64,000 nt of DNA from Podarcis cretensis (taxonomy: Eukaryota). Of the stretch, positions 32,433 through 51,293 are shown one piece after another. The translations under genes were made by a program, and so were the position numbers. Positions within the stretch are counted from its first letter, which is position 1, and each line of letters begins with the position of its first letter. The stretch is from positions 40,858,001 to 40,922,000 of the forward strand of contig OX638161.1 of NCBI GenBank assembly GCA_951804945.1, read 5' to 3'. The notes under the pieces were generated by a model. That model ran no database searches, was not told the DNA's origin, and saw nothing but the letters and a program-made list of their open reading frames with translations.

Positions 32433-35400
32433 GTTATTATTTATACCCCGCCCATCTGGCTGGGTTCCCCCAGCCACTCTGGGCGGCTTCCAACAAAATA
32501 TTAAAATACAGTGGTCTGTTAAACATTAAAAGCTTCCCTGAACAGGGCTGCCTTCAGATGTCTTCTGAATGTCAGGTAGTTGTTTATTTCTTTGACATCT
32601 AATGGGAGGGCGTTCCACAGGGTGGGTGCCACTACCAAGAAGGCCCTCTGCCTGGTTCCCTGCAACTTGACTTCTCGTAGCAAGGGAACCGCCAGAAGGC
32701 CCTTGGCGCTTGATTCTTAAAAGGCTGAGGGCACTCTATAACCCAGCCTACCAGATTTCTGGGTCTCATGCAAACTCTGTGGACACTCTTTCCCTTCTAT
32801 GGTATTTGGAGGCTCCCCTAGAACTATGCCAGTAATGATAGTGAGCTTTTTGAGGGACCCAGTGTGCAGGATTTCAAGGGTGGTTTCCCCCCCCCCCCAG
32901 GTAGCCCTGCCTGTGAAATGTGAACAGGTGTGCCCTGCCATTTATATGATTGCGTCAAGGCAGCTAAAAAAGACAGTAAAAAAGATTACATGCTGCTTAG
33001 ATTATTGGTAGTGACAAGGGACTCTAACTCCAGCTTATGTTTTTGGGAGCCCAGCATCCTCTACCTGAAAGATTGTATCTCCTTGTATTAACCAACCCAG
33101 ATGTTGAGATCCTCAGGGGAGCACCTTCTCAGTCCCATCAACATCAGAAGCACAGTTGGTGGTGACGTGAGGGAGAGCCTTTTCTTTGGCTGCTCCTATA
33201 TTGTGGAATTCCCTCCCAAGAGAATTTAGCTTGGTTCCTTCTTTGTATCCTTCTGCCAGCAGGCGAAGATGTTCCCATTCAAACAGGCTAAGGTGCAGAC
33301 AATGCTGATCACTTTGCCACTGTCAGGGCAAACTACATTTTAACTGCTGGTTTGAAATGGGTTCTAATCGATTTTCACTATTGTTTTTAACTAGTTTGTT
33401 TTTACTACTTAGTATATTGTAATGATATTTTTTAATGTTCGAAGCTGCTTTGATCCCAACTTATGGAAAAGGCAGACTATAAATATGTTAAATCATGTCA
33501 GTAACCTTGAGGTGCACCCCCTTTTGTCAATCCCAGCATCTCGACCATTAACTTTTCTTCATGCTTCTGTCCTGCAGGTGCCATCCACCACCCAGGCAGT
33601 GGCACATCATTTGGTCCTGCCGGCACCCCTCATGGCTCCTTCCTCAGCCCCAGCCCCCACATTGGTAAGAGCTGGCGCACCAAAATGCCAGGGCTGGTGG
33701 GGCAGGACCCAGCATCTTCCATACGATTGTTCACTCCTCTGCTCGCCTCTTTTCCAGATCCCTTTGGCAGGCCCCCCAGTTTTGCCTCCCTCGGTGCGCT
33801 CTCCAATGGGGCTTTTGGGGGCCTGGGCAACCCATCTTTCAGTGAGTATTATTTGGGGGTTAGGGGGCATAAAATCTGTAATTAATGGGGCCAGAATGGT
33901 GTTCTCTAGGCTGACTTACAGACAGGGATTTGAACACAGGACTCTTTCCTTTCCTCTTACTCCACCCTCTACTCTTACAGCTGGAGAAGTAACCCAGGAA
34001 ACCCATCCCAGCCTTTGCAGCCCCATTATGAAGAACTGGAGACAGAAAATCCTGGGTTCTAAGTTTTGGGCTTTTTTTGCTCTCCCCTTGTTCACCCACA
34101 TTCCATTGTTTCCCTCTCAGAGCTGGAAGGAAAACCCAGGAGCTATGGATCCCACCCTCTTCCTTCTGCCAATTTCTGTGTCCCCTCTCAGAGGCTAAGT
34201 TTCAGGACTTTTTCCATTGAGCCAAAGCTTTTGAAGTTCCTCCCTTTGCCTCCATTTGTGGTGCTCCTACCACCTGGCTGTCATTTCAAGGCTAAGGCTT
34301 TACACTTCTTCCTTGCAAACTTGAAGCTGTTAGGACTGATCTAAACTTTCAGAAAAGCAAATGGGGCAATACCTGGGTTGGGGCAGGAGTGGAATAGGGA
34401 GACAAAGTCTGCCCTTAGGAAACTCAAACATTAGGAGAAGCCCAAGTTAGAACCTGTGTCCTTGGTATGCTGGCTTCCTTCATGCAGAAAGTTTTGGTTG
34501 TGAGAAATCATTCATATGTGTGATGCATTCCCCCCCCCCCCCCAATTCACTAGCAGCATTTGGGAGGGGGCTATTTCTGAATGATTGCATGCACGAGCTC
34601 TTATTTATGCTCTTTTCACCATGGTGCAGTGTTCATCAGTGCTCTAGACATGATGGCTAAGCTCTACCTCCATAGTCGGAGGCAGTAATGCTTCTAAATA
34701 CCAGTTGCTAGAAGCCACAGAAGGGAGAGTGGTCTTGTGCTCACTTCCTGCTTGCTGGTTTCCCACAGGTGTCTGGTTGGCCCGTGTGAGAACAGGATGC
34801 TGGACTAGGTTTGCCATTGGCTTGATCCAGCAGGCTCTTTTTATATTCTTATTCCAACTTGGGGACCTAGTTGCCCCACACTTCTTCCCTGGGTGAGCCC
34901 ATCTGCCTGGGGCTTTTGAGGACCCCGCTGCAAAGGTGCCACGGGGACAGCAGTGTTTTCTGATGTGCCAGGTCCAATCTTTCTTCTTTCCCCTCCCAGA
35001 CTCGAGTGCTGTCTTTGGGCAGAAGGACAGTCCCGGAGCTCCATCCTTCCCTAGCCCCCATGAGGCATGGAACCGCTTACACCGCACACCCCCTTCCTTT
35101 CCCACCGCCCCAGCCTGGCCCAAAGGTGGGGCTGGAGATGGGGCTGAGCGTGGAGGAACCCAGCACGAGAAGGAGAGCGAGAAGCCAGAAGGGCCAGTGA
35201 TCAAGGATGAAAAGGACAGGTAAGAGGCGGAACGCAGAGGTGATGACAAGGGGGTCAAGGCTGTTCCTGGATGAAGAGTGAATGGAGTTTGATACAGTGG
35301 AACCTCTGTTTTTGAACGTAATCCATTTCAGAAGACGGTTTGACTTCTGAAACGTTCGAAAACCGAGGATCAATGGGCAGTCTGCAAAACCCATTAAAAA

Positions 35401-36471
35401 CATGGAAAAACTTGCAGTGGAAGCCGTTCGACTAACCGATGCGCATTCAAAAACGGAAGCAATTACTTCCAGGTTTTCGGTGTTCAGGTTCTGAATTGTT
35501 CTGCTTCTGAGATGCTCGAAAACCAAGGTTCCACAGTATTCAGGAGAGGGAGGGCAGTTGCTGTTCTTTGGGACTCTATAGGTATGGGTGGAGTAAGAGG
35601 CAGTTGGGCCAGCCCAGTATGACAACTAAGGGGTCTGCATACGGCTGGCTGACAGTACCAGGTTGTGGAGAGTGACTTTTTCCTACCCCCAACACAAACT
35701 TTCTTTTGCCTGTGTATGTGTTTCAGAGATGCCCTCTTCTCGCGCCATCCACTGCGTGCCTCTCCAGCTACTCCCACCCCAAAGAACCTAGCATTGGCTC
35801 ACGAGGAGCCCCCAGGCCGGTCACACATCCCAGCAGAGCGTGAGCATCGCTACGGAAGTCCGGCAGGTTCAGGCCACGCCTCCCGCTCCCCTTACCCAGA
35901 GCTGCCTCTGAAGAAGGAAGTGAAGGTCAAGGAGGAGCCTGAGTTGACGGGCTTCGAGGGGGCGCTGCGCACGGGGCCTCCCTTCCACAGCACCCTGCAT
36001 GTTTCCCACCCCCTGGGGACGCTGGCTGTGTTTGAGAGACCCCAGACTGGAACTGGCGGAAGCGTCTCCCCATACCTGGTTGCTGCCCCGCCCTCAGCTG
36101 CCTCCTATGCTGCGCTCGAAGCCTGGCGCGAGCCCTATCACCGGGGGCTGGAGCTGCACCCGCTACAGCGCCTGCCCCGCTACCTGGAGACCCCGTCGCC
36201 TGCCGCCACTGCCGCCGAGGACTACGAACGGGCCCGGTTATATGGCCTGGCGCCCCCACCCCACCCCAGCCTCATGGCCTATCCCCGCCATCCAAACGGG
36301 CTACTGGCAAAAGCCACCCCTGCTGCGGCTGCCGCCGCGGCTGCTGCCGCTGTAGGACTGCTGAGCGCCCCCCCGCCTCTCATCCCTGCTTCGAATGCTC
36401 GGCCCTGCTCCCCCCGCCGTGCTCCTGACATCCGGGAACTGGCAGCCTACAAGGACCGGGACTCCAGATAA
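19934..36471 (+). CDS. FBRS: Fibrosin (AUTS2/FBRS/FBRSL1 family, PRC1.3/1.5-associated), long isoform ~1036 aa
   Basis: join(19934-20329,23838-24011,25647-25682,26258-26287,27218-27266,27906-28311,29279-29517,30130-30329,30525-30569,30746-30841,31455-31523,31606-31635,31827-31898,32232-32364,33578-33664,33758-33841,35000-35219,35727-36471); phases consistent; total 3111 nt. Hallmarks: [90 protein letters not shown]. Position between PRR14 and SRCAP favours FBRS over AUTS2/FBRSL1. Confidence 0.92.
23612..23713. repeat. (ATT)n/(ATC)n microsatellite
   Basis: Direct inspection; it explains the poly-Ile in ORF 23534. Confidence 0.95.
25854..25877. repeat. (GT)n microsatellite
   Basis: Direct inspection. 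Confidence 0.9.
32394..32713 (-). mobile_element. L2-type LINE 3' end with (AAT)n tract, in FBRS intron 14
   Basis: A run of ~12 AAT units followed by TTTATACCCCGCCCATCTGGCTGGG...CTGGGCGGCTTCCAAC...GGGAGGGCGTTCCACAGGGTGGGTGCCACTACCAAGAAGGCCCTCTGCC, typical of lizard L2 elements in antisense orientation. Confidence 0.7.
33090..33490 (+). mobile_element. Older L2-type LINE 3' fragment
   Basis: GAGAGCCTTTTCTTTGGCTGCTCCTATATTGTGGAATTCCCTCCC...GGAAAAGGCAGACTATAAAT resembles an L2 ORF2 end (RAFS.AAP.LWNSLP) plus 3' UTR. Confidence 0.55.
34646..34852 (+). mobile_element. CR1 LINE 3' end
   Basis: ...GAGAACAGGATGCTGGACTAGGTTTGCCATTGGCTTGATCCAGCAGGCTCTTTTTATATTCTTAT, resembling a squamate CR1 terminus. 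Confidence 0.65.
35295..35536. mobile_element. Tc1/mariner (Tigger-like) MITE
   Basis: TA|CAGTGGAACCTCTGTTTTTGAAC ... CTCGAAAACCAAGGTTCCACAG|TA: imperfect TIRs with a TA target duplication; related to 54322-55048. Confidence 0.75.
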
Positions 36472-42109: not shown

Positions 42110-43600
42110 TCGAAATGTTGTCAACAACGTCTTGTCAACCTCGTTTTGCGCGACGGTGCGAGCACCCTCCCATGTAAACAATATTCATTGAAACTTTCCT
42201 GACTTCCAAAGTCGCATCCGAAGTATCTGCGAGTCCTAGGGGAACTGCATGTTTTCACGAGCCAAAGCTGCCTCTTCCCATTCATAAGCACGGTGTGCAT
42301 CTTGTTTTGAGCACCTTCGAATAGTCGCGCCAGCCCGCCCAGCGAACAATTGGAAGAATTTTTGAGGAAAGACAAATCGAGTCCTCCCTCCCTCCCTCCG
42401 TCCGAAAGAGAGAGGGAGACTCCAATCCCCAGCATCCCCCAGGACTCCATTTCCCAGCATGCTCTTCACTCGCGATGGCCTTTCCCTCGCCCCGCGGGCT
42501 CGCAGTCCCGCATCCCGCTCTATCTGATTGTGAGGGAGAAGAGCGCCGTCTTCCGCAATTCTTCTGGCCCGTGGCCTCTCGCCGGGACGCCGCCCTCCCG
42601 CGCGACGCGCCTGTGAGACACTTTGGGTTTGAGTTTCTTTTCTCTTTCTCCACGCACGCACACCCTCCTTCGCGTTACCCGAGCTCTCGCGAGACTTGAG
42701 CGCCGAGGCCGGCGGGTGGAGGGAGCGGTGGGAGGAGGGAGGGGCTGGCCCTGGCGCTTGGTGGTGGCGGCCGCCATTTTGCCGCGGCGGGTCGGGTCTG
42801 GCTCGGCGGGGCCTGGTTAGGGATCAGCATCCGGGTGGGAGGGGTGGGCGACGTGCCGAGGAGCACCGGCGAAGGCCGCGCAAAGGGAGAAGTCGCGCGG
42901 GAGAGGCCTGGGGGCCGCGGATGGCGGCGGATTCTCTCCGGCCGAGGCGGCGGCGCTGGGGCTGAGGCGGCGGCAGGAGGAGGCGGGGCAGGAGGCGCCT
43001 CCCCTCCCTCCTCCCTCCTCCCCCCTCCCACCCAGGTAAGATGGCGGACCGGCCGGGGCTCTACTCCTCTCGCTCACACCCACCTCCCTGGAAGGGTGCA
43101 AGTCTCTGCTTCGAGTCGGGAGGGAAAAGTGAGGAAACAGATAAGAGCGCGCGCGTGTGCCTGGTTGCCGGTGGTCGCGCGCGCGCGCGCGCGGCCTTTT
43201 ACCTCCCCCGTCCCTTCCTCTCTCCCGTCGGTTATTTCCCTCCCCTGCCTATAGAGGGCGCACTAATGGAGTGTGGCGGGGCGGGAAATAAGAGAAAGGA
43301 GCCAATGTGGGAGCCGCACGCGCTTACCCAGCCAACGGCCGCTCTCAATGCTGGCCTATTATTACTTCACCTATCGCCCTCCTCCCACCCCCCCCTCACC
43401 TCGTTTCCTCGCGCGCCGCGAAACCGACCAACCAACGGCCGCCTGGGTGGGGGAGGGGCGAGCGGGGATTCTCAGGGGACTAGGGAGGGAGGGCGAGGGA
43501 GGGAGGGTTTTGGGGGAAACCGGGGCGGGGTCAAGGGGTCAAAGGGGAAAGGTGGGAGGGAAAGGGTGACAAAGGGGTTAAAGGGTGGGGGGAAATCAAA
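42110..43600 (+). promoter_or_regulatory. SRCAP: CpG island / SRCAP promoter and first exon (ends 43035)
   Basis: Very CpG-rich; palindromic TCTCGCGAGA (BANP/ZBTB33-type) at 42685-42694; YY1 CCGCCATTTT at 42771-42780; consensus donor CAG|GTAAGA at 43035/43036. Confidence 0.8.
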
Positions 43601-43916
43601 GGGCATCTAACTTGTGCTGAAAAAGAAAGAAACTAGGCGTCAGAGGGGGAATCACTTTCGATTAGGATGCAATGAATGAATAAATGCAGGATTGCGGGTA
43701 CAAGGATTGATTTTTAGCGGGGCGCAAAGGTTCTGCGAAAGGGTGGCAAATTCAAAGGGTATTAGGGTATCATCTGGAACTTGAGCCATTGCACTGCTCT
43801 AGGGTTTGGGTGGCTAGTGATAATACTTGAAAAGTTGGGAGGGGGTTGCAGTTACTTAGCACCATCAAAGTTTTGCAAGAAACCAGACCAGAAATAAGTG
43901 AAAGGTTAATGTGGTC

Positions 43917-46900
43917 ATGGAGCCTGAGGAGGGGCAGGCTGAAGCTCAGGATGATAGGAAGGGAAAGGAGGCTGTAGTGAATGAAGAGACCACAGTGGAA
44001 GGACCTCCCAATGAGGCAGAGAGAAAGATAACTGGATTGCTTCCAGAGACAGGTGTGGGACAGGGAGAGGCTAAAGACTCAGAGGCAGAAGAGGAGGCTG
44101 AAAAAGAACATGAAGCACCAACTACTAGAGAGTTGATGGAACCAGACCAGGATACATTTGGACCCTTAGCAGAACTGGATAGGGGGGTGGCTGAGGATGC
44201 ACTGAAAAGAGAAGTGGCATTAGGAATGTCTGGGGAAGAGGCTGAGGAAATTATTGAACCAGATCTGAGAAAAGCAGAAGAGTTGGAGACAGTGATTCTT
44301 GAGGAACTTCAGCTTAAGAGTAATAGAGAGAAAGAAGAAGTTGAAGAGTCAAGAGAACCAAATCAGGAGGAAACCAGTGTTTTTGGGAGCCCAGACGAGA
44401 GGGAAGCTGAGGGGAAGACTGGAAAAGGAATGGATCAGCAGGAGACTCAGGAATTTATTCATGAGGAAGAAACACTGCTTGGAGAGGGTGAAATGGTTCT
44501 AGAAATGGGGGGAAATTGGACTGAGGAGTTGGCAGGGCCGGACCACGGGAAAGAAGAGGATTTGGTAGAAGAGGACCATGTAGATTCTGGAGAGAGGGTT
44601 GAAAAGGGAGATGAACAGGAAAAGTTGATGGAACTGGAAGAGAGGGAAGCTGAGGCAACTGTCAGGGAAGATGAGGCAGTGGGGGAGGCTGAAAAGATGC
44701 CAGAGTCGATGGAGGTGGGAGAGAGTGACAAAGAAGGCGAATCAACAGATAATCATGGAGAAATGGAGGAGTTGTCAGGACTGGGTCAAGGGGAGATCCT
44801 AGAGGTCACTGGAAAGGAAGAGGATGTGGCACCTGCAATTGACTATGAGGAAACTGAGAAGGTGCCAGATGTAAATGAGAGAGAGCTAGAGGAAGTGACT
44901 GCAGAGGAAGATGCAATATTAGCAAGGGGTGGGGAGGAGTTGGTAGGACTAGGTCAGGGGGAAATTGAGGTGTTGACTGGAGAGGAGGAACCAGTTTTGG
45001 GTAAGAGGGAGGCGGAGATGACAGTTGGACCAAGTGAGGAGGGACTTGGTGAGGAAATTGAAAGGGAAAACAGGGTATCTGGAGTAGATCAGAGAGAGGC
45101 TGAAAGCATGATTGTGGAAGGAGATTTGGCATCATCAGAGGGTTGGGGGGAAGTTGAAGACTTGGAGAAGTCAAGCAGGGGAGAAGCAGAGGAGGTGGCA
45201 CCATTAATGGATCAAGTTAAAGCTGAAGTCCTACAAGAAGATCTGAGGGGGTCAGAGTTGGTGATTGCTGAGAGAGAGGCAGGTGCAGCTGAGGAGAAGG
45301 CTGAGCATTTGGTGGTGGCAAGTCAGGGAGAAGTTGAGGGTAAGACTGAAAAAGAAAGTATGGCATCAACACTGGATCAGGGATCACCAAGAATAGATGA
45401 AAAGCAGGCAGAAGAGGTGGCTGCAGAGAAAGATGTGGAATCAGTAGAAGATCAAAAGCAAGTTGAGGATTTGGCTGGGATAAGTCAGGGTGAGATTGGC
45501 AGTATGGTAGCCACAGTGGAGGAAGGGGAAGATAAGAGGGAGGCAGAGGTGGCAACTTCAAAGAGAGATGTAGCATTTATTGAGGGGGAGGGTTTGGTAG
45601 TGACAAGTCAGGTAGAGACTGAGGAGGTGACTGTCAAGGAGGATATGATACACGTGGCTCTTGATGTGGCTGAGCAAGTGATAGGAGCAGCTCAGAGGGA
45701 AACAGAAAAGATGAGTGCAGTGGGTCAGGAAGAAGGAAGGGAGGAGGCAGTGGGAGCACCAGTGAGAGTAGCTGGAGCACAAGAAGAAACTGGAGGCCTG
45801 GAGGAAGAACTTGTGCAAAGTCAGGAGATGGGGCCTGGAGAAGAGGTGAAACTAGGAACTAGTCAGGAGAAAGTTGAGCTAGCAGAACCAGAACAAAGGG
45901 AGACAAAAGAGCAAGTAGGACTTGATCAGGGAGAAGCCAAGCAGTTGGGTTCAACTGAGAGGGTTACTAGGGAGGAATCTCGAGAAATAAGAGAGGCATT
46001 ATTCAGGGATCAGAGTGATACTAAGGTGCTGGTGGAACCATTTCAGGGACCAGTAGTGGAGGTTACAAGTGTAGGTGAGATTGTGTTGACTGAGCAGCAT
46101 CAAGGTACTGTGGGAAGAAAGGTACCCTCTCAGGAGAAGACATTAGTTTGGAGCCCAGAATTAGAAGAACAGTTGGGAGGACCAACTCAGGAGATGGCAG
46201 GCGTGCCTTCCAGGGAGGGGATATTGAGTCAAAGGGCAAAACCAAGTGAAGAAGATACCAGAGTCACTTGGTTGGCATCTGATACGAACCTGGCTCAAGG
46301 TCAAGTGGAACCAAGCCTGAAGGTGGCTGAATTGAATAAATCAGGTTCCTCAGTGCTGTCATCACATTTGTCACAGCGCACTGCCATAGGAAGTCAAGAG
46401 GAACGTCGCAAGTTGAAGGGGAAAATAATTTCAGGGTTGGCAGGATTACGGCAAGGGCCAATACTGGTACCACATCAAGGGGCAACACGCTTATCTGGAT
46501 TCCGTCGTGGAGTGCTGGAGCACAGGGCTCCAGGGTTGATTGTGACCAGTTTAACAGCAATGGCTAAGCAAAAGGGAATGATTAAGGAGGCTCGTACGCA
46601 ACTGGGAAAGGGTGAATTAGATCAGAGGGAGACACGATCAGCTGAATTGAGGTCTCGTGCAATTAGGGTTAAAGTAGGTGAGCCGGTGGTTATGATGGGG
46701 TACAGAATTGGACGGGAAGGGATGTCATGTTTCTCTGAGGCAGATAACAGGATAGAGAGCTTTCAGCAGGTTCCTGTGATGGAGGAGGCAGGAAAGGGAT
46801 CTGATCAGACCCCAGCAGAACCCCCGAGGCAGGAACAGATAGTTAAGGAGTTGGAGATACTGGCCAAGGATGTTGATGACAGAGCAAGGCAACATCCAGA

Positions 46901-47615
46901 AGGAATGTACTTGCCATGGCTTGGTAGGCCACTGACACAAGATTATTCGACAATACGACCAGGTTCTGGTTGGACTGCAGGCCTTGGGTCCGGGCATGGA
47001 CTTGCTTTAGGGCCATTGCGGGCTGGAATAAAAGAACGAATAAACACGATGGTGACAGGTCAGGGAGCAGTAAAGTCAGCAGGACCAAGTCCTGAGCCAC
47101 CTGTGTCTGGGATGGGAAGAAGGGTGTATGGGCTTACAAGCCAATCAGCCAATGTACACTGGCTGAAGGACGTGTTGGGATCTAAGCATACAGTGTCTCG
47201 ACTCTCTGTAACAGTTCGTGGCTCAAAAGCAAACAGTCCTGACTCTATGGCAGAGAGACGAAGTCCAGGCCTGTTAACAGGAAAGCAAGAGTTGAAAGAT
47301 TGGCGGGATGGGGTAATGGGAATTGCAATTAAAAGGTACAATGCCATGAGGCGGGCAATGTGGGGCGAAGGCCCAGCTGGTTTGCATGTGAAGGGAGTGA
47401 AGGTGGCTGAAAGTCCCATTGATACTATTCCATTGAGTTCTGTTAAGACTAGTTCCATTCTGGGGCAGGTTGAACAGAGGGCACTGAGGCTGGCACAGCA
47501 TGTGGAGGGTGAGGCTGTGTCAGGATTGGAAGTAGAAGGGCAGGGGCTGGCTGAGAGGCTGAAGCAGGATATGGAGCCAGCAGGGTCAGGCCAGGGAGGT
47601 AGAATTACAAGGTAA
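43917..47615 (+). CDS. Uncharacterised 1232-aa Glu/Gly-rich ORF in SRCAP intron 1; candidate giant alternative first coding exon of SRCAP (exon end 47611)
   Basis: 3.7 kb without a stop codon; gtcATGg strong Kozak context with an in-frame TGA just upstream; strong purine bias; no recognisable RT, transposase or gag motifs; stop overlaps a donor (ACAAG|GTAACT) whose phase matches the next SRCAP exon. Confidence 0.75.
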   Translation: MEPEEGQAEAQDDRKGKEAVVNEETTVEGPPNEAERKITGLLPETGVGQGEAKDSEAEEEAEKEHEAPTTRELMEPDQDTFGPLAELDRGVAEDALKREVALGMSGEEAEEIIEPDLRKAEELETVILEELQLKSNREKEEVEESREPNQEETSVFGSPDEREAEGKTGKGMDQQETQEFIHEEETLLGEGEMVLEMGGNWTEELAGPDHGKEEDLVEEDHVDSGERVEKGDEQEKLMELEEREAEATVREDEAVGEAEKMPESMEVGESDKEGESTDNHGEMEELSGLGQGEILEVTGKEEDVAPAIDYEETEKVPDVNERELEEVTAEEDAILARGGEELVGLGQGEIEVLTGEEEPVLGKREAEMTVGPSEEGLGEEIERENRVSGVDQREAESMIVEGDLASSEGWGEVEDLEKSSRGEAEEVAPLMDQVKAEVLQEDLRGSELVIAEREAGAAEEKAEHLVVASQGEVEGKTEKESMASTLDQGSPRIDEKQAEEVAAEKDVESVEDQKQVEDLAGISQGEIGSMVATVEEGEDKREAEVATSKRDVAFIEGEGLVVTSQVETEEVTVKEDMIHVALDVAEQVIGAAQRETEKMSAVGQEEGREEAVGAPVRVAGAQEETGGLEEELVQSQEMGPGEEVKLGTSQEKVELAEPEQRETKEQVGLDQGEAKQLGSTERVTREESREIREALFRDQSDTKVLVEPFQGPVVEVTSVGEIVLTEQHQGTVGRKVPSQEKTLVWSPELEEQLGGPTQEMAGVPSREGILSQRAKPSEEDTRVTWLASDTNLAQGQVEPSLKVAELNKSGSSVLSSHLSQRTAIGSQEERRKLKGKIISGLAGLRQGPILVPHQGATRLSGFRRGVLEHRAPGLIVTSLTAMAKQKGMIKEARTQLGKGELDQRETRSAELRSRAIRVKVGEPVVMMGYRIGREGMSCFSEADNRIESFQQVPVMEEAGKGSDQTPAEPPRQEQIVKELEILAKDVDDRARQHPEGMYLPWLGRPLTQDYSTIRPGSGWTAGLGSGHGLALGPLRAGIKERINTMVTGQGAVKSAGPSPEPPVSGMGRRVYGLTSQSANVHWLKDVLGSKHTVSRLSVTVRGSKANSPDSMAERRSPGLLTGKQELKDWRDGVMGIAIKRYNAMRRAMWGEGPAGLHVKGVKVAESPIDTIPLSSVKTSSILGQVEQRALRLAQHVEGEAVSGLEVEGQGLAERLKQDMEPAGSGQGGRITR

Positions 47616-48069
47616 CTGGGTTAAGTGTGGAGTGAGAGGGAAGGAACAAAAGGTTTGGGAGATAGTGGGTTATTTATGAGCTAGGGACAAAATTGAGCTA
47701 TAGAAGCAGAGAGTTAATAGGATGCTATAGCAATAGAGTTGAGTTGCAAAATCTCAGCTTGCAGGATGAATGGGTTGTAGATCTCTCTCAAAAGAATGAA
47801 GCCAAGAAGGGAAGTAAACTTCCCTGGGATAATGATATGAGGATGACGGGCAGAATATTGACGCTTCTGAAGCAAAGGTGGGTACATAGGAAGCAAAATA
47901 AAAATAATTTATTATTTATACTCCACTCATCTAGCCGGGTCACCCCAGATACTGAGAAGATTTTGGGCTCTGGATACCTAGGCATGGGAGTGAGTGAAAA
48001 GGACACTGCTAGACAACTCAGAATCCGTAAAGTGGATGGGAAAGTGAGATAATTCTAGTGGTTCACTAA

Positions 48070-48205
48070 ACCGCACCCCAAACAGGTTCCTGCCTCTTTT
48101 CATAGGCTTGAATTTGGTAGCTGGTGCGTACAGTAAAACTCTCCACCGCAACCCGTGGGCCGGCTATTCCCATGCTGTCTGCGTAACAATAAAAGAGAGA
48201 CAGGG
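48070..48205 (+). ncRNA. SNORA30: H/ACA box snoRNA, SNORA30/SNORA37-like
   Basis: Hairpin 1 closed by CGCACC/GGTGCG; H box ACAGTA (48130-48135); hairpin 2 closed by CTCT/AGAG; ACA at 48200-48202 plus 3 nt; ~135 nt. ATTTGGTAGCTGGTGC matches human SNORA30 as I recall it, and human SNORA30 is hosted in an SRCAP intron. Confidence 0.7.
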
Positions 48206-48349
48206 TTTGATCTACCCTTTGGCAGAGTCGTTCAGGGTCCCAAGAGCAAGTTTGAATGATCCTTACCTAAAGGAATAGGTTGCTGTGCATCTACCACATG
48301 CGCGCACACACAAAATGTTCTCTGGACTAACGGTTCCATCTTTTTTCAG

Positions 48350-48423
48350 GTGTAGTATTCCCCAGGAAAGCGAAACCCTGGAAGTTCAGCCTGACAAGCA
48401 AGAGGAGTTCGCAGCTCACGCAG
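48350..48423 (+). other. SRCAP: SRCAP leader exon 2 (5' UTR, or coding in the extended isoform)
   Basis: Branch point CTAAC at 48327-48331, polypyrimidine TTTTTTCAG|G, donor CAG|GTACAG (alternative in-phase donor 6 nt further on); open in the SRCAP frame: (R)CSIPQESETLEVQPDKQEEFAAHA. Confidence 0.7.
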
Positions 48424-49684
48424 GTACAGGTGAAACTGAATACCATTGGGGAATTGGCAACAGGGGTTTAAGCAGGAACATCAAGCAAATATAAATCTTT
48501 GGCTGTTTTTCTGAGCTCAGTGTTGGATTTATTTTCTTTTCAAAATGCTTTTTCTGTCACCAACATCTATATTGATGGGCCAGAATTTATTATGTACTGG
48601 AATCTGGCTTGGCCACAACTAAACTTAATTTGCTTGTTGAGATATGATGGAGGGATATAAAAAGCAGCTCAAAGGAATGAAATAAAATTTACAGTATCTT
48701 TTCATAACTCCCCTGGAAATTTTTGGAAAGTCTAGGCATTTAGTACTAAACAGTAGAATATGTATCCAGTGGAGGAAGATAGGGGAATCCTCTACTTGTG
48801 GGCAGGGTTTACATCTTTTGTGTCTAAATATTAAAGTTTTAAATGCAAACTTTGAGAGAAAACATATTTTCACATTACCCAAACATTTATTCTGTAACAG
48901 AAAATGTTTGCTTGTGTGTACAAACTTAGCAACGGAGATTTTCTAATGTTGTTGTGTTTTTGATAGCTACTGTGTTGGATATATTAATTTTCTACTGGGT
49001 TCTGCCACCAGATCTCTTGTATATTGTAAATTGGGAGAGGCTAACCCCCAGTTTGGGGGGCCCTGATCCGGCTCCCAAGCAAATTTTTCTGGGGCTCCCC
49101 TGATTTTGGCAACAGCAACAAAAAAGGAAAAAAAGAACCCCTCCTCCCTTCACTGTAATTATTAATCAAATCATATTTATACTCACAGCTTCTTTTTTGA
49201 AAAAAACCTAGTGAGAAATGAGATTTGATCAGCTGGGAACTGTTTAGTTTACATTTATGCTCTTTAGTTAATAGCTGCTTTTAAGGTGCATTACTTTCCT
49301 TCTTTAATTTTTAGTGCTTTACTTTGTGTTAAAGGAAAGTAAAATTGTATGCAGAGGGCATGCTAATGTCATTTTGACGTTTAATTTCACTTCCTCTGAA
49401 AATCTTCCTTTAGCTTGTTCTTGAGTGGGTGTCTTTCAGTTCTTTTCAGTCTGGCTCTGATCACAATGCGACTGATTTATCTTCATGAATCTCTAGATAA
49501 TTCTGAGACAGGCAGTCCCGAGCGCAGGCTGGGCTGCCAAGGAACCCAGGAGCTGGACGGCTCGTCCCAGTGGCTGGCTGACCAGAATGAGGCCGGTTCC
49601 GAGCATGCACTGGAGCAGGAAGCCAGCACTACAACCGCAAACGAAGCTGTTGGGACGAGAGGCAAAGAGCAAGAGAGAACTAAA

Positions 49685-51293
49685 ATGCAGAGCAGTCCTC
49701 CCCAACAGCAACATGCGCTGCAACCACAGGTAGAGTTGGAGGTGAGGGGAATCCCAGTGTAAGGCCCTGTGTTTTGAGGCCGCTTACTGGATTACAGTTT
49801 TTCAAAACACTGTAGTTCATTAGGGGTCTTCGGAATGAATTTTGACTGCTTTAATGAAGTATGTGGATGAGCATTGTACTACAAAGAGCATCTGTGAGAG
49901 TCAGAACAAGGGATGCTCTTCTCTGATGCTCTACCTAGACAAGCTCCCCAGAGCCGTTAGGTTCCTTTCTAGCATTAAGGCCACTATAATAATGTTCTAC
50001 CCTCGTTTGTCTCCTCTTGTTCATCTCAGACTGCATCGGACAGAATGACAGGCAGTAACCCAGTGTCACCAGCCTCCTCAGGCTCACCTGCCTCAACTGG
50101 CAGCATCTCACCACCACATCTCACCCACGACTCCTCGCTGGACAGTCACCCAGGTTTTGATGTTCCCAAGACACAGAACAGAGCCCTTGTGTCGCCCGGG
50201 ATGTACACCTCCCCGGACCCTGCAAGCATGTGGGACAAGACACACGCGGAGATTGCTGAGCAGGCTAAGCATGTAAGCCACGCAGGGTCCAGGGATCATT
50301 TGGCCCCCTCTGCTCTCTTGAGTTGGGCATGAACATACACAATCTAAGTTAACATTCTGTTTAGCTTGTCGTTGCAAGCTGCAGTTCACATGGATACAGT
50401 GTTTTGGGCTAACTGACTTGGGGGATGTATTCCAGGAGGCAGAGATTGAAAACCGCATTGCAGAAATGAAGAAGGAAGGGTTCTGGTCCATGAAACGGCT
50501 GTCGAAGGTGCCTGAGCCAGTCCGGCCCAAAGTGCACTGGGATTATCTTTGCGAGGAGATGCAGTGGCTCTCTGCTGACTTTGCCCAAGAGCGCCGATGG
50601 AAGAGGGGTGTTGCGAGGAAGGTGAGTTTGATGGAAACAGCTGCCAATCTACAAACATTTAACCCATCTCTTTCAGTCAGTTTTCACTCATGCATTCCAA
50701 TCTCTGGGTTTAAGGGCATTTCATAATCGTGCAATTTTGTAACACCTCAGGCTTGTAGCTTGTGCTGTTGCAGAAAAGCAATATAATATGTGTGTCCCTA
50801 GGATTTCCATCCACTTTAGTGAAGTGGAGCTAGCTCTTCCCTACGACCCAGATTTAGGAAGGACTGTTTAGAGCCGTGGAAATCTGTGAAGACTTGTGAT
50901 TATTAACATGATCCTTCTCTCCTTTGTTTCTTGCAGGTGGTGCGCATGGTGATCAGACACCACGAAGAGCAGAAGCAAAAAGAAGAACGAGCCAAACGGG
51001 AGGAGCAGGCCAAGCTGCGCCGTATTGCCTCGTCCATCGCCAAAGAGGTCAAGCAATTCTGGAGCAACGTAGAGAAGGTACGTGAGGAACCTGTCTCGCA
51101 TCATAAAAGCAGCATGCAGGCCTTGCTCCTGAATACAGGAGCCACACCTTGAGCCAGGTGTCTGGAGCTGGTTGCCTCTACTCTGCCTAATCAAAAATAC
51201 TGTGGATTCACCCATAGAAGGGTTGAGTGTGAGTGAATCTCTTGACTTTATAGTTTGTTGTGGAATTTCTCTAATTAATATATGCGTATAGGT

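Follow-up and report, generated by a model that had tools for sequence, protein, structure and literature searches.

In the stretch of Podarcis cretensis DNA analysed here, which comprises 64,000 nucleotides (nt) of the forward strand (contig OX638161.1, positions 40,858,001 to 40,922,000; hereafter the window, numbered from its first letter and containing no N), a giant open reading frame (ORF) of 1232 sense codons lies on the plus strand upstream of the coding start of the chromatin remodeller gene SRCAP. We found that this ORF is a real, transcribed gene, so far in lizards and snakes only. Its best explanation, to which we assign a probability of about 0.65, is an orphan gene that stands alone, with an RNA that retains the stop codon and is either joined to the SRCAP leader or overlaps it. 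The preliminary description of this DNA had instead placed the ORF inside intron 1 of SRCAP and spliced it in frame onto the SRCAP start, so that SRCAP would gain an N-terminal extension of about 1319 residues. A lineage-specific arm of some 1,300 residues on the remodeller that deposits H2A.Z would be striking if true, but the RNA evidence speaks otherwise, and the reading of the ORF as a giant in-frame arm of SRCAP is not supported.

The ORF starts at an ATG at position 43917 in a strong context (GTC-ATG-G, with G at −3 and at +4), extends to 47612 and is followed by a TAA at 47613–47615. Its frame contains no stop codon, as against a mean of 73.7 and a minimum of 45 in 2000 composition-preserving block shuffles, which bears out the giant open frame described earlier; the other two plus-strand frames over the same stretch hold 87 and 96 stops. 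Purines dominate the base make-up (A 0.32, G 0.35, T 0.185), with a GC skew of 0.52 and an AT skew of 0.34. Since shuffles that keep the local composition still give about 74 stops, the low T content does not explain the open frame, and a chance ORF arising from T-poor DNA was ruled out. Furthermore, the interspecies insertions and deletions seen in the ORF are all multiples of three (12, 15, +3, 21 and 5+1 among the Podarcis species compared), and a further in-frame one, of 45 extra letters, is present in contig 4 of the RNA contig run X1 (see below) at 44082–44084.

These observations bear on a sceptical reading, namely that the ORF encodes no functional protein and is either a chance frame in purine-rich DNA or a decaying gene of a transposable element or virus. 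The composition of the stretch, the lack of any known domain in Pfam, the low-confidence fold of the predicted protein and an N-terminal arm that evolves as if neutral would all fit such a reading. However, the probability of zero stops by chance is negligible, lacertids, iguanians and snakes all keep the frame open and share conserved motifs, and every insertion or deletion seen is in frame. A Pfam scan of the ORF protein with E values up to 1 gave no family, hence no transposable-element or viral domain, and no direct or inverted repeats of note flank the ORF; on these grounds a transposable-element or viral ORF was discarded. We thus give next to no credence to a non-functional frame, and the ORF is a real coding sequence confined to one lineage.

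Relatives of the predicted protein are already present in the databases; identities to the window ORF are given here as BLASTP and alignment values, in that order. The hypothetical predicted protein of Podarcis lilfordi (1233 residues; 98% and 98%), Podarcis muralis LOC114583697 (XP_028560880; 1233 residues; 94% and 96%) and Zootoca vivipara LOC132593046 (1276 residues; 85% and 89%) are collinear over 100% of the length and share the end ...GRITR. Lower identities were obtained with an Anolis sagrei protein named 'A-kinase anchor protein 12-like' (1363 residues; 39% and 45%), a hypothetical protein of Phrynocephalus forsythii (1028 residues; 40% and 44%) and a Thamnophis elegans 'titin homolog' (1000 residues; 43% and 38%). 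Further members, which lay outside this identity comparison, are Candoia aspera LOC134495752 (1180 residues), an uncharacterized protein of Micrurus lemniscatus (1062 residues) and several isoforms from Notechis scutatus (LOC113421704) and Pseudonaja textilis (LOC113443587), of 882–1093 residues. In our alignment of nine complete proteins (A3), the starting methionine aligns with residue 1 of the window protein in all of them, with the start MEPEEG.... The stop falls in the same place, after ..(I/F)(S/T)R, in the lacertids, Thamnophis, Micrurus, Notechis, Pseudonaja and one fragment, but elsewhere in the models of Anolis, Phrynocephalus and Candoia. The squamate RefSeq predicted proteins therefore show the same start, the same acidic arm and C-terminal motifs and mostly the same stop as the window ORF, with no difference in kind.

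The family was found in lacertids, Anolis, an agamid, a boid, a colubrid and elapids, with at least 10 squamates in which it is annotated as a stand-alone protein; the database relatives range from 882 to 1363 residues, all stand alone, and none carries SRCAP sequence. When the last 432 residues were used in a full HMMER scan of 1.84 billion cluster representatives, only six clusters were returned, five of them named and all of these squamate, the sixth being an unnamed fragment of 84 residues. A profile search with the full-length alignment A3 was swamped by Glu-rich words, returned three lacertids only and is uninformative on distribution. On present annotation, the family appears to be limited to lacertids, iguanians and snakes, and the lineage restriction proposed earlier holds among the named matches. 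The gene is already annotated, though uncharacterised, and a literature search found nothing on these LOC numbers, on an upstream cistron of SRCAP or on an upstream ORF of SRCAP. The locus would encode a large protein, seen only in lizards and snakes, whose conserved tail has neither a known domain nor a literature.

The names attached to these proteins (titin, AKAP12, RP1L1 and enolase-phosphatase) are automatic and were set off by Glu-rich low complexity; the Pfam scan gave no such domain, and the squamate labels 'titin', 'AKAP12-like' and 'RP1L1' are low-complexity artefacts. 'RP1L1' and 'enolase-phosphatase E1-like' are found as low-complexity names on the Notechis and Pseudonaja isoforms. 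For these two snakes RefSeq holds three to five isoforms each, differing by in-frame deletions inside the acidic arm, and one Notechis/Pseudonaja isoform stops early at ...LRADV; such isoforms represent either intron-like splicing in the repeat arm or artefact models.

We compared RNA over positions 43551–49550, using two contig runs (X1 and X5), which are complementary DNA as judged by their joints without introns, and two raw RNA sequencing (RNA-seq) runs. X1 comes from organism A, 1.8% diverged from the window, and X5 from organism B, both of which are related Podarcis species. The coverage of X1 starts at 43590, and contigs tile 43590–44357. A single X1 contig of 3590 nt, with a depth of 12.7, then runs unbroken from 44359 to 47877, including the TAA, and continues with 48350–48423 and from 49497 onward; the intron bins of X1 show a depth of 0–0.19, against 12.7 on the long exon. 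About 0.56 of the sampled words were recovered in all four samples of the X1 study, which is the value expected for complete coverage at 1.8% divergence, and in the four samples of organism A the ORF appears to be as abundant as the leader exons. In X5, a contig with a depth of 78.7 starts at 47751 behind adapter letters and has both joints, 47877 to 48350 and 48423 to 49497, the second of which is also confirmed by three reads of the raw RNA-seq run X23. The depth of the ORF in X5 is 2–7.5, as compared with 78.7 for the SRCAP contig, and in the organism B sample the ORF appears to amount to about 5% of SRCAP.

The ORF, its TAA and the next 262 bases are thus transcribed as one stretch, with RNA coverage from about 43590, beside a CpG island. 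In the RNA, the ORF sits in a long exon ending at 47877, and its earlier placement inside intron 1 of SRCAP is not borne out. The exon at 48350–48423 and the acceptor at 49497, both predicted in the preliminary description, were confirmed by GT..AG joints in RNA contigs of two species. The donor at 47877 is the only one seen feeding SRCAP leader exon 2, and splicing from it leaves the TAA in the RNA together with the 262 bases behind it (47616–47877), which contain 10 in-frame stops. The coordinates of these features are collected in Table 1, in which a slash marks the splice point.

Table 1. Features of the ORF and the SRCAP leader in the window
Feature	Positions	Strand	Basis
CpG island	42400..43600		CpG observed/expected and GC
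Long exon (~4.29 kb) with the whole ORF, TAA and 262 bases	43590..47877	+	X1 contigs; ends at AAG/GTGGGT
ORF, predicted stand-alone protein, orthologue of Podarcis muralis LOC114583697	43917..47615	+	0 stops; start and stop shared with lacertids
Acidic N-terminal arm, residues 1–799	43917..46313	+	~24% Glu, isoelectric point 4.1
Basic C-terminal tail, residues 800–1232	46314..47612	+	isoelectric point 10.1; conserved
Candidate donor AAG/GTAACT enclosing the TAA	47609..47617	+	use not seen in 4 runs
SRCAP first leader exon, short form	47751..47877	+	5' end of the X5 contig of depth 78.7
SRCAP leader exon 2 (74 nt), non-coding in the RNA seen	48350..48423	+	joints in X1 and X5 contigs
SRCAP exon 3: 188-nt leader, then start at 49685 (MQSSPPQQQ)	49497..49729	+	acceptor joint in X1, X5 and 3 X23 reads; boundary 49729 is a sequence reading (GT next), not RNA-derived

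The fusion with SRCAP depends on a different donor, the GT at 47611. The ORF does end as described earlier, with ATT ACA AG/GTAACT and the TAA inside the GT site, and use of this site in a minor or tissue-specific isoform would carry the ORF in frame into SRCAP. When the leader exons were read one by one, by reference and not as a joined model, exon 2 at offset 1 (48351–48422) gave the claimed 24 open codons (CSIPQE...AAHA) and exon 3 at offset 2 (from 49499) the claimed 62, leading into MQSSPPQQQ, so that the frames match and stay open. However, each leader exon is open in two of its three frames, and an in-frame path free of stops would therefore arise by chance in about 1 of 4–5 cases, which makes the fit weak evidence. 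AAG/GTAACT also scores respectably as a donor (8.6, about sixth or seventh among the long exon's 237 GT sites, by an approximate 5' splice-site matrix that serves as a guide only), but five GT sites inside the ORF score as well and likewise showed no joints in the RNA examined, and the donor AAG/GTGGGT at 47877 ranks first with 9.7.

Furthermore, no joint from 47611 was found in the four runs, two of contigs and two of raw reads, as compared with the joint from 47877 to 48350 in both contig runs; the sole joint seen into 48350 therefore starts 266 nt past the proposed donor. The contigs do drop minor variants, and the raw reads reach a depth of only about 1, so that rare isoforms could go unseen here. 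The stop position that is constant in lacertids, a colubrid, elapids and one fragment could likewise be taken as the mark of a conserved donor, but the conserved C-terminal tail accounts for it equally well, and no isoform of the family in the databases exceeds 1363 residues or includes SRCAP sequence. The claim of splicing between the ORF exon and the SRCAP leader thus stands in part, as the contigs join this exon to exons 2 and 3, from 47877 and not from 47611; the in-frame extension of about 1319 residues does not, since the TAA is kept in the RNA and the relatives are all stand-alone. We consider an extended SRCAP very improbable, even as a minor product.

A second alternative accepts the stand-alone gene and disputes its physical link to SRCAP. 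In this case, the RNA of the ORF would end at a poly(A) site past 47877 and merely overlap SRCAP exon 1, and the X1 contig would be an assembly chain. An AATAAA at 47897, only 20 nt 3' of the donor, could provide such an end; the overlap of 47751–47877 exceeds an assembly word; the X5 depths of the ORF and SRCAP lie more than tenfold apart; and a contig that spans two genes does not prove a single transcript. On the other hand, X1 shows no separate assembled path into exon 2, the depth of exon 2 equals that of the ORF contig, and no poly(A) loose ends are listed, although a high-copy repeat after 47897 blurs the reading there. We regard two merely overlapping genes as unlikely on balance, yet as an explanation to be taken seriously.

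According to the reading that we prefer, a stand-alone orphan gene joined to or overlapping the SRCAP leader, transcription would begin at about 43590, at the 3' edge of the CpG island. This is the sole CpG island in the region (CpG observed/expected 0.93 and GC 0.70 for 42400–43000, 0.74 and 0.64 for 43000–43600, then 0.46 and 0.44 after 43600), with none at 47751, and it is likely the promoter of the ORF-bearing transcripts. Ribosomes would load at the strong-context ATG and translate as far as the TAA at 47613, giving a largely disordered protein of 1232 residues in which an arm of acidic repeats is followed by a conserved basic tail. Two starts would share the donor at 47877, a distal one near 43590 that gives the 4.3-kb ORF exon and a proximal one, which we infer near 47751, that gives the ordinary short SRCAP leader. 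With the long leader, 524 nt (262+74+188) and at least 10 AUGs separate the TAA from the SRCAP AUG further 3', so that RNAs of this form would yield the orphan protein rather than SRCAP, and any one of them is unlikely to be translated into both proteins. In the leader of the ORF transcript, five upstream ATGs (43667–43909) open ORFs of 2–22 codons before the ATG at 43917.

Several points weigh against this reading. The presence of the ORF and SRCAP on one RNA is taken from a short-read contig, and such contigs can chain overlapping transcripts; the AATAAA at 47897 could end the ORF RNA instead; and the two raw RNA-seq runs of organism B gave only sporadic coverage of the ORF. In addition, the proximal start depends on a single contig end with adapter letters, at a position without a CpG island, the protein product is predicted from sequence and RNA alone, and in the acidic arm a comparison of close species gave no sign of purifying selection on residue identity. 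Less certain than the core claim of an orphan gene are the two-start model and the role guessed below for the protein.

The transcriptional entanglement of the ORF with SRCAP is of a known kind, either an alternative long first exon or a conjoined transcript. The GNAS XL exon, which encodes the start of XLalpha-s, is a large first coding exon used as an alternative and spliced in frame onto exons that are shared, and the preliminary description had likened the present locus to it. At both loci, a large first exon of alternative use precedes the usual start, has its own promoter region and is joined in the RNA to shared exons. They differ in that the GNAS donor precedes any stop and gives a fusion, whereas the donor used here lies 266 nt past the stop and gives a separate protein; with the TAA retained in the RNA of two species, an architecture of the GNAS XL type was not borne out. 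SNURF-SNRPN is a bicistronic vertebrate mRNA, and conjoined or read-through transcripts are known as well. The present case would resemble such RNAs if a single molecule carries both parts, as one short-read contig of X1 does with the ORF, its stop and the SRCAP exons behind them, though contigs of this sort can chain overlapping transcripts; the upstream cistron here is very large (1232 codons).

It is conceivable, but in our judgement very doubtful, that the ORF and SRCAP form one conserved squamate tandem unit, in which switching between the promoters at 43590 and 47751 and between the donors at 47611 (inside the stop) and 47877 would select among three outputs: SRCAP alone, the stand-alone acidic protein at the expense of SRCAP, and a rare extended SRCAP with a histone-binding-like acidic arm. 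Irrespective of this, the transcripts of the ORF use the same donor and leader exons as the essential chromatin remodeller SRCAP, and the locus offers a clean case of a taxonomically restricted gene beside a conserved neighbour, with possible interference with the promoter of that neighbour.

The predicted protein is divided into two parts of opposite character. The acidic arm is composed of degenerate repeats built on a (G/S/D)QGE motif and shares only 32–37% identity with the arms of Anolis, the agamid and the snakes. Against organism A, the 40 listed differences in the arm comprise 10 synonymous and 30 nonsynonymous ones, the neutral expectation being 29% synonymous; residue identity in the arm is essentially unconstrained between close species, while the reading frame is kept. 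The basic tail shows 50–60% identity among iguanians and snakes, and contains motifs that are invariant in lacertids, Anolis, the agamid and snakes, namely KGKIIxGLAGLRQG, APGLIVT, MGYRIGRExMSC, WLGRP, SGxTAG and ELKDWRDGVMG(I/V)AI(K/R)RYNAMR.

Searches of the tail against Pfam and PDB profiles gave no match, and the ESM Atlas no usable match. An AlphaFold2 model of the tail, built from a 10-row alignment, had a mean predicted local distance difference test (pLDDT) score of 35.7 with only four helices, which was too poor for a fold assignment, and this was dropped. The model suggests that the tail is disordered and carries conserved linear motifs along with helices. As a weak guess, for which the only grounds are the pattern of charges and a single conserved basic patch (RRKLKGK), the protein might be a nuclear or chromatin-associated disordered scaffold.

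The downstream neighbour is identified as SRCAP, an ATPase of the SWR1 type, by its exon sequences. The exon at about 50.5 kb encodes an HSA domain (PF07529, E value 2.5e-14), with residues 102–168 of human SRCAP (PDB 6igm chain H, E value 3e-33) as the best match, and the exon at about 55.7 kb encodes the start of SNF2-rel_dom (E value 4.3e-15), with SRCAP residues 614–668 of the same chain as the best match. Both exons are closer to SRCAP than to EP400 or SWR1. The downstream exons are thus similar to human SRCAP, the protein here starting with MQSSP, whereas the ORF protein is dissimilar to human SRCAP and to every solved chain in the PDB profile search.

Immediately 3' of the donor at 47877, positions 47897–47940 form a short AT-rich high-copy repeat beginning with AATAAA, on which contigs and raw reads pile up (X5 bin depth 1406) before leaving it at either end for unrelated sequence; a piece of an interspersed repeat with expression at many loci is the probable explanation. 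In the upstream part of the window (1–42000), ten long ORFs (for example 33422–34198 and 35665–36471 on the plus strand) gave no Pfam match.

The short SRCAP leader contains eight upstream ATGs, six of them in 47751–47877 and the others at 49587 and 49605. The frame entered from the last two is open beyond the SRCAP start to the end of exon 3, and this overlapping upstream ORF could damp the translation of SRCAP. Finally, between 42700 and 43040, within the CpG island, a GCCGCCATTTTG motif resembling a YY1 site is located at about 42765, and a very good donor candidate, CAG/GTAAGA, at 43035; no contig joined a foreign exon to 48350. To judge from these sequence features, the motif and the donor could mark a further non-coding first exon, either of SRCAP or of a divergent neighbour.

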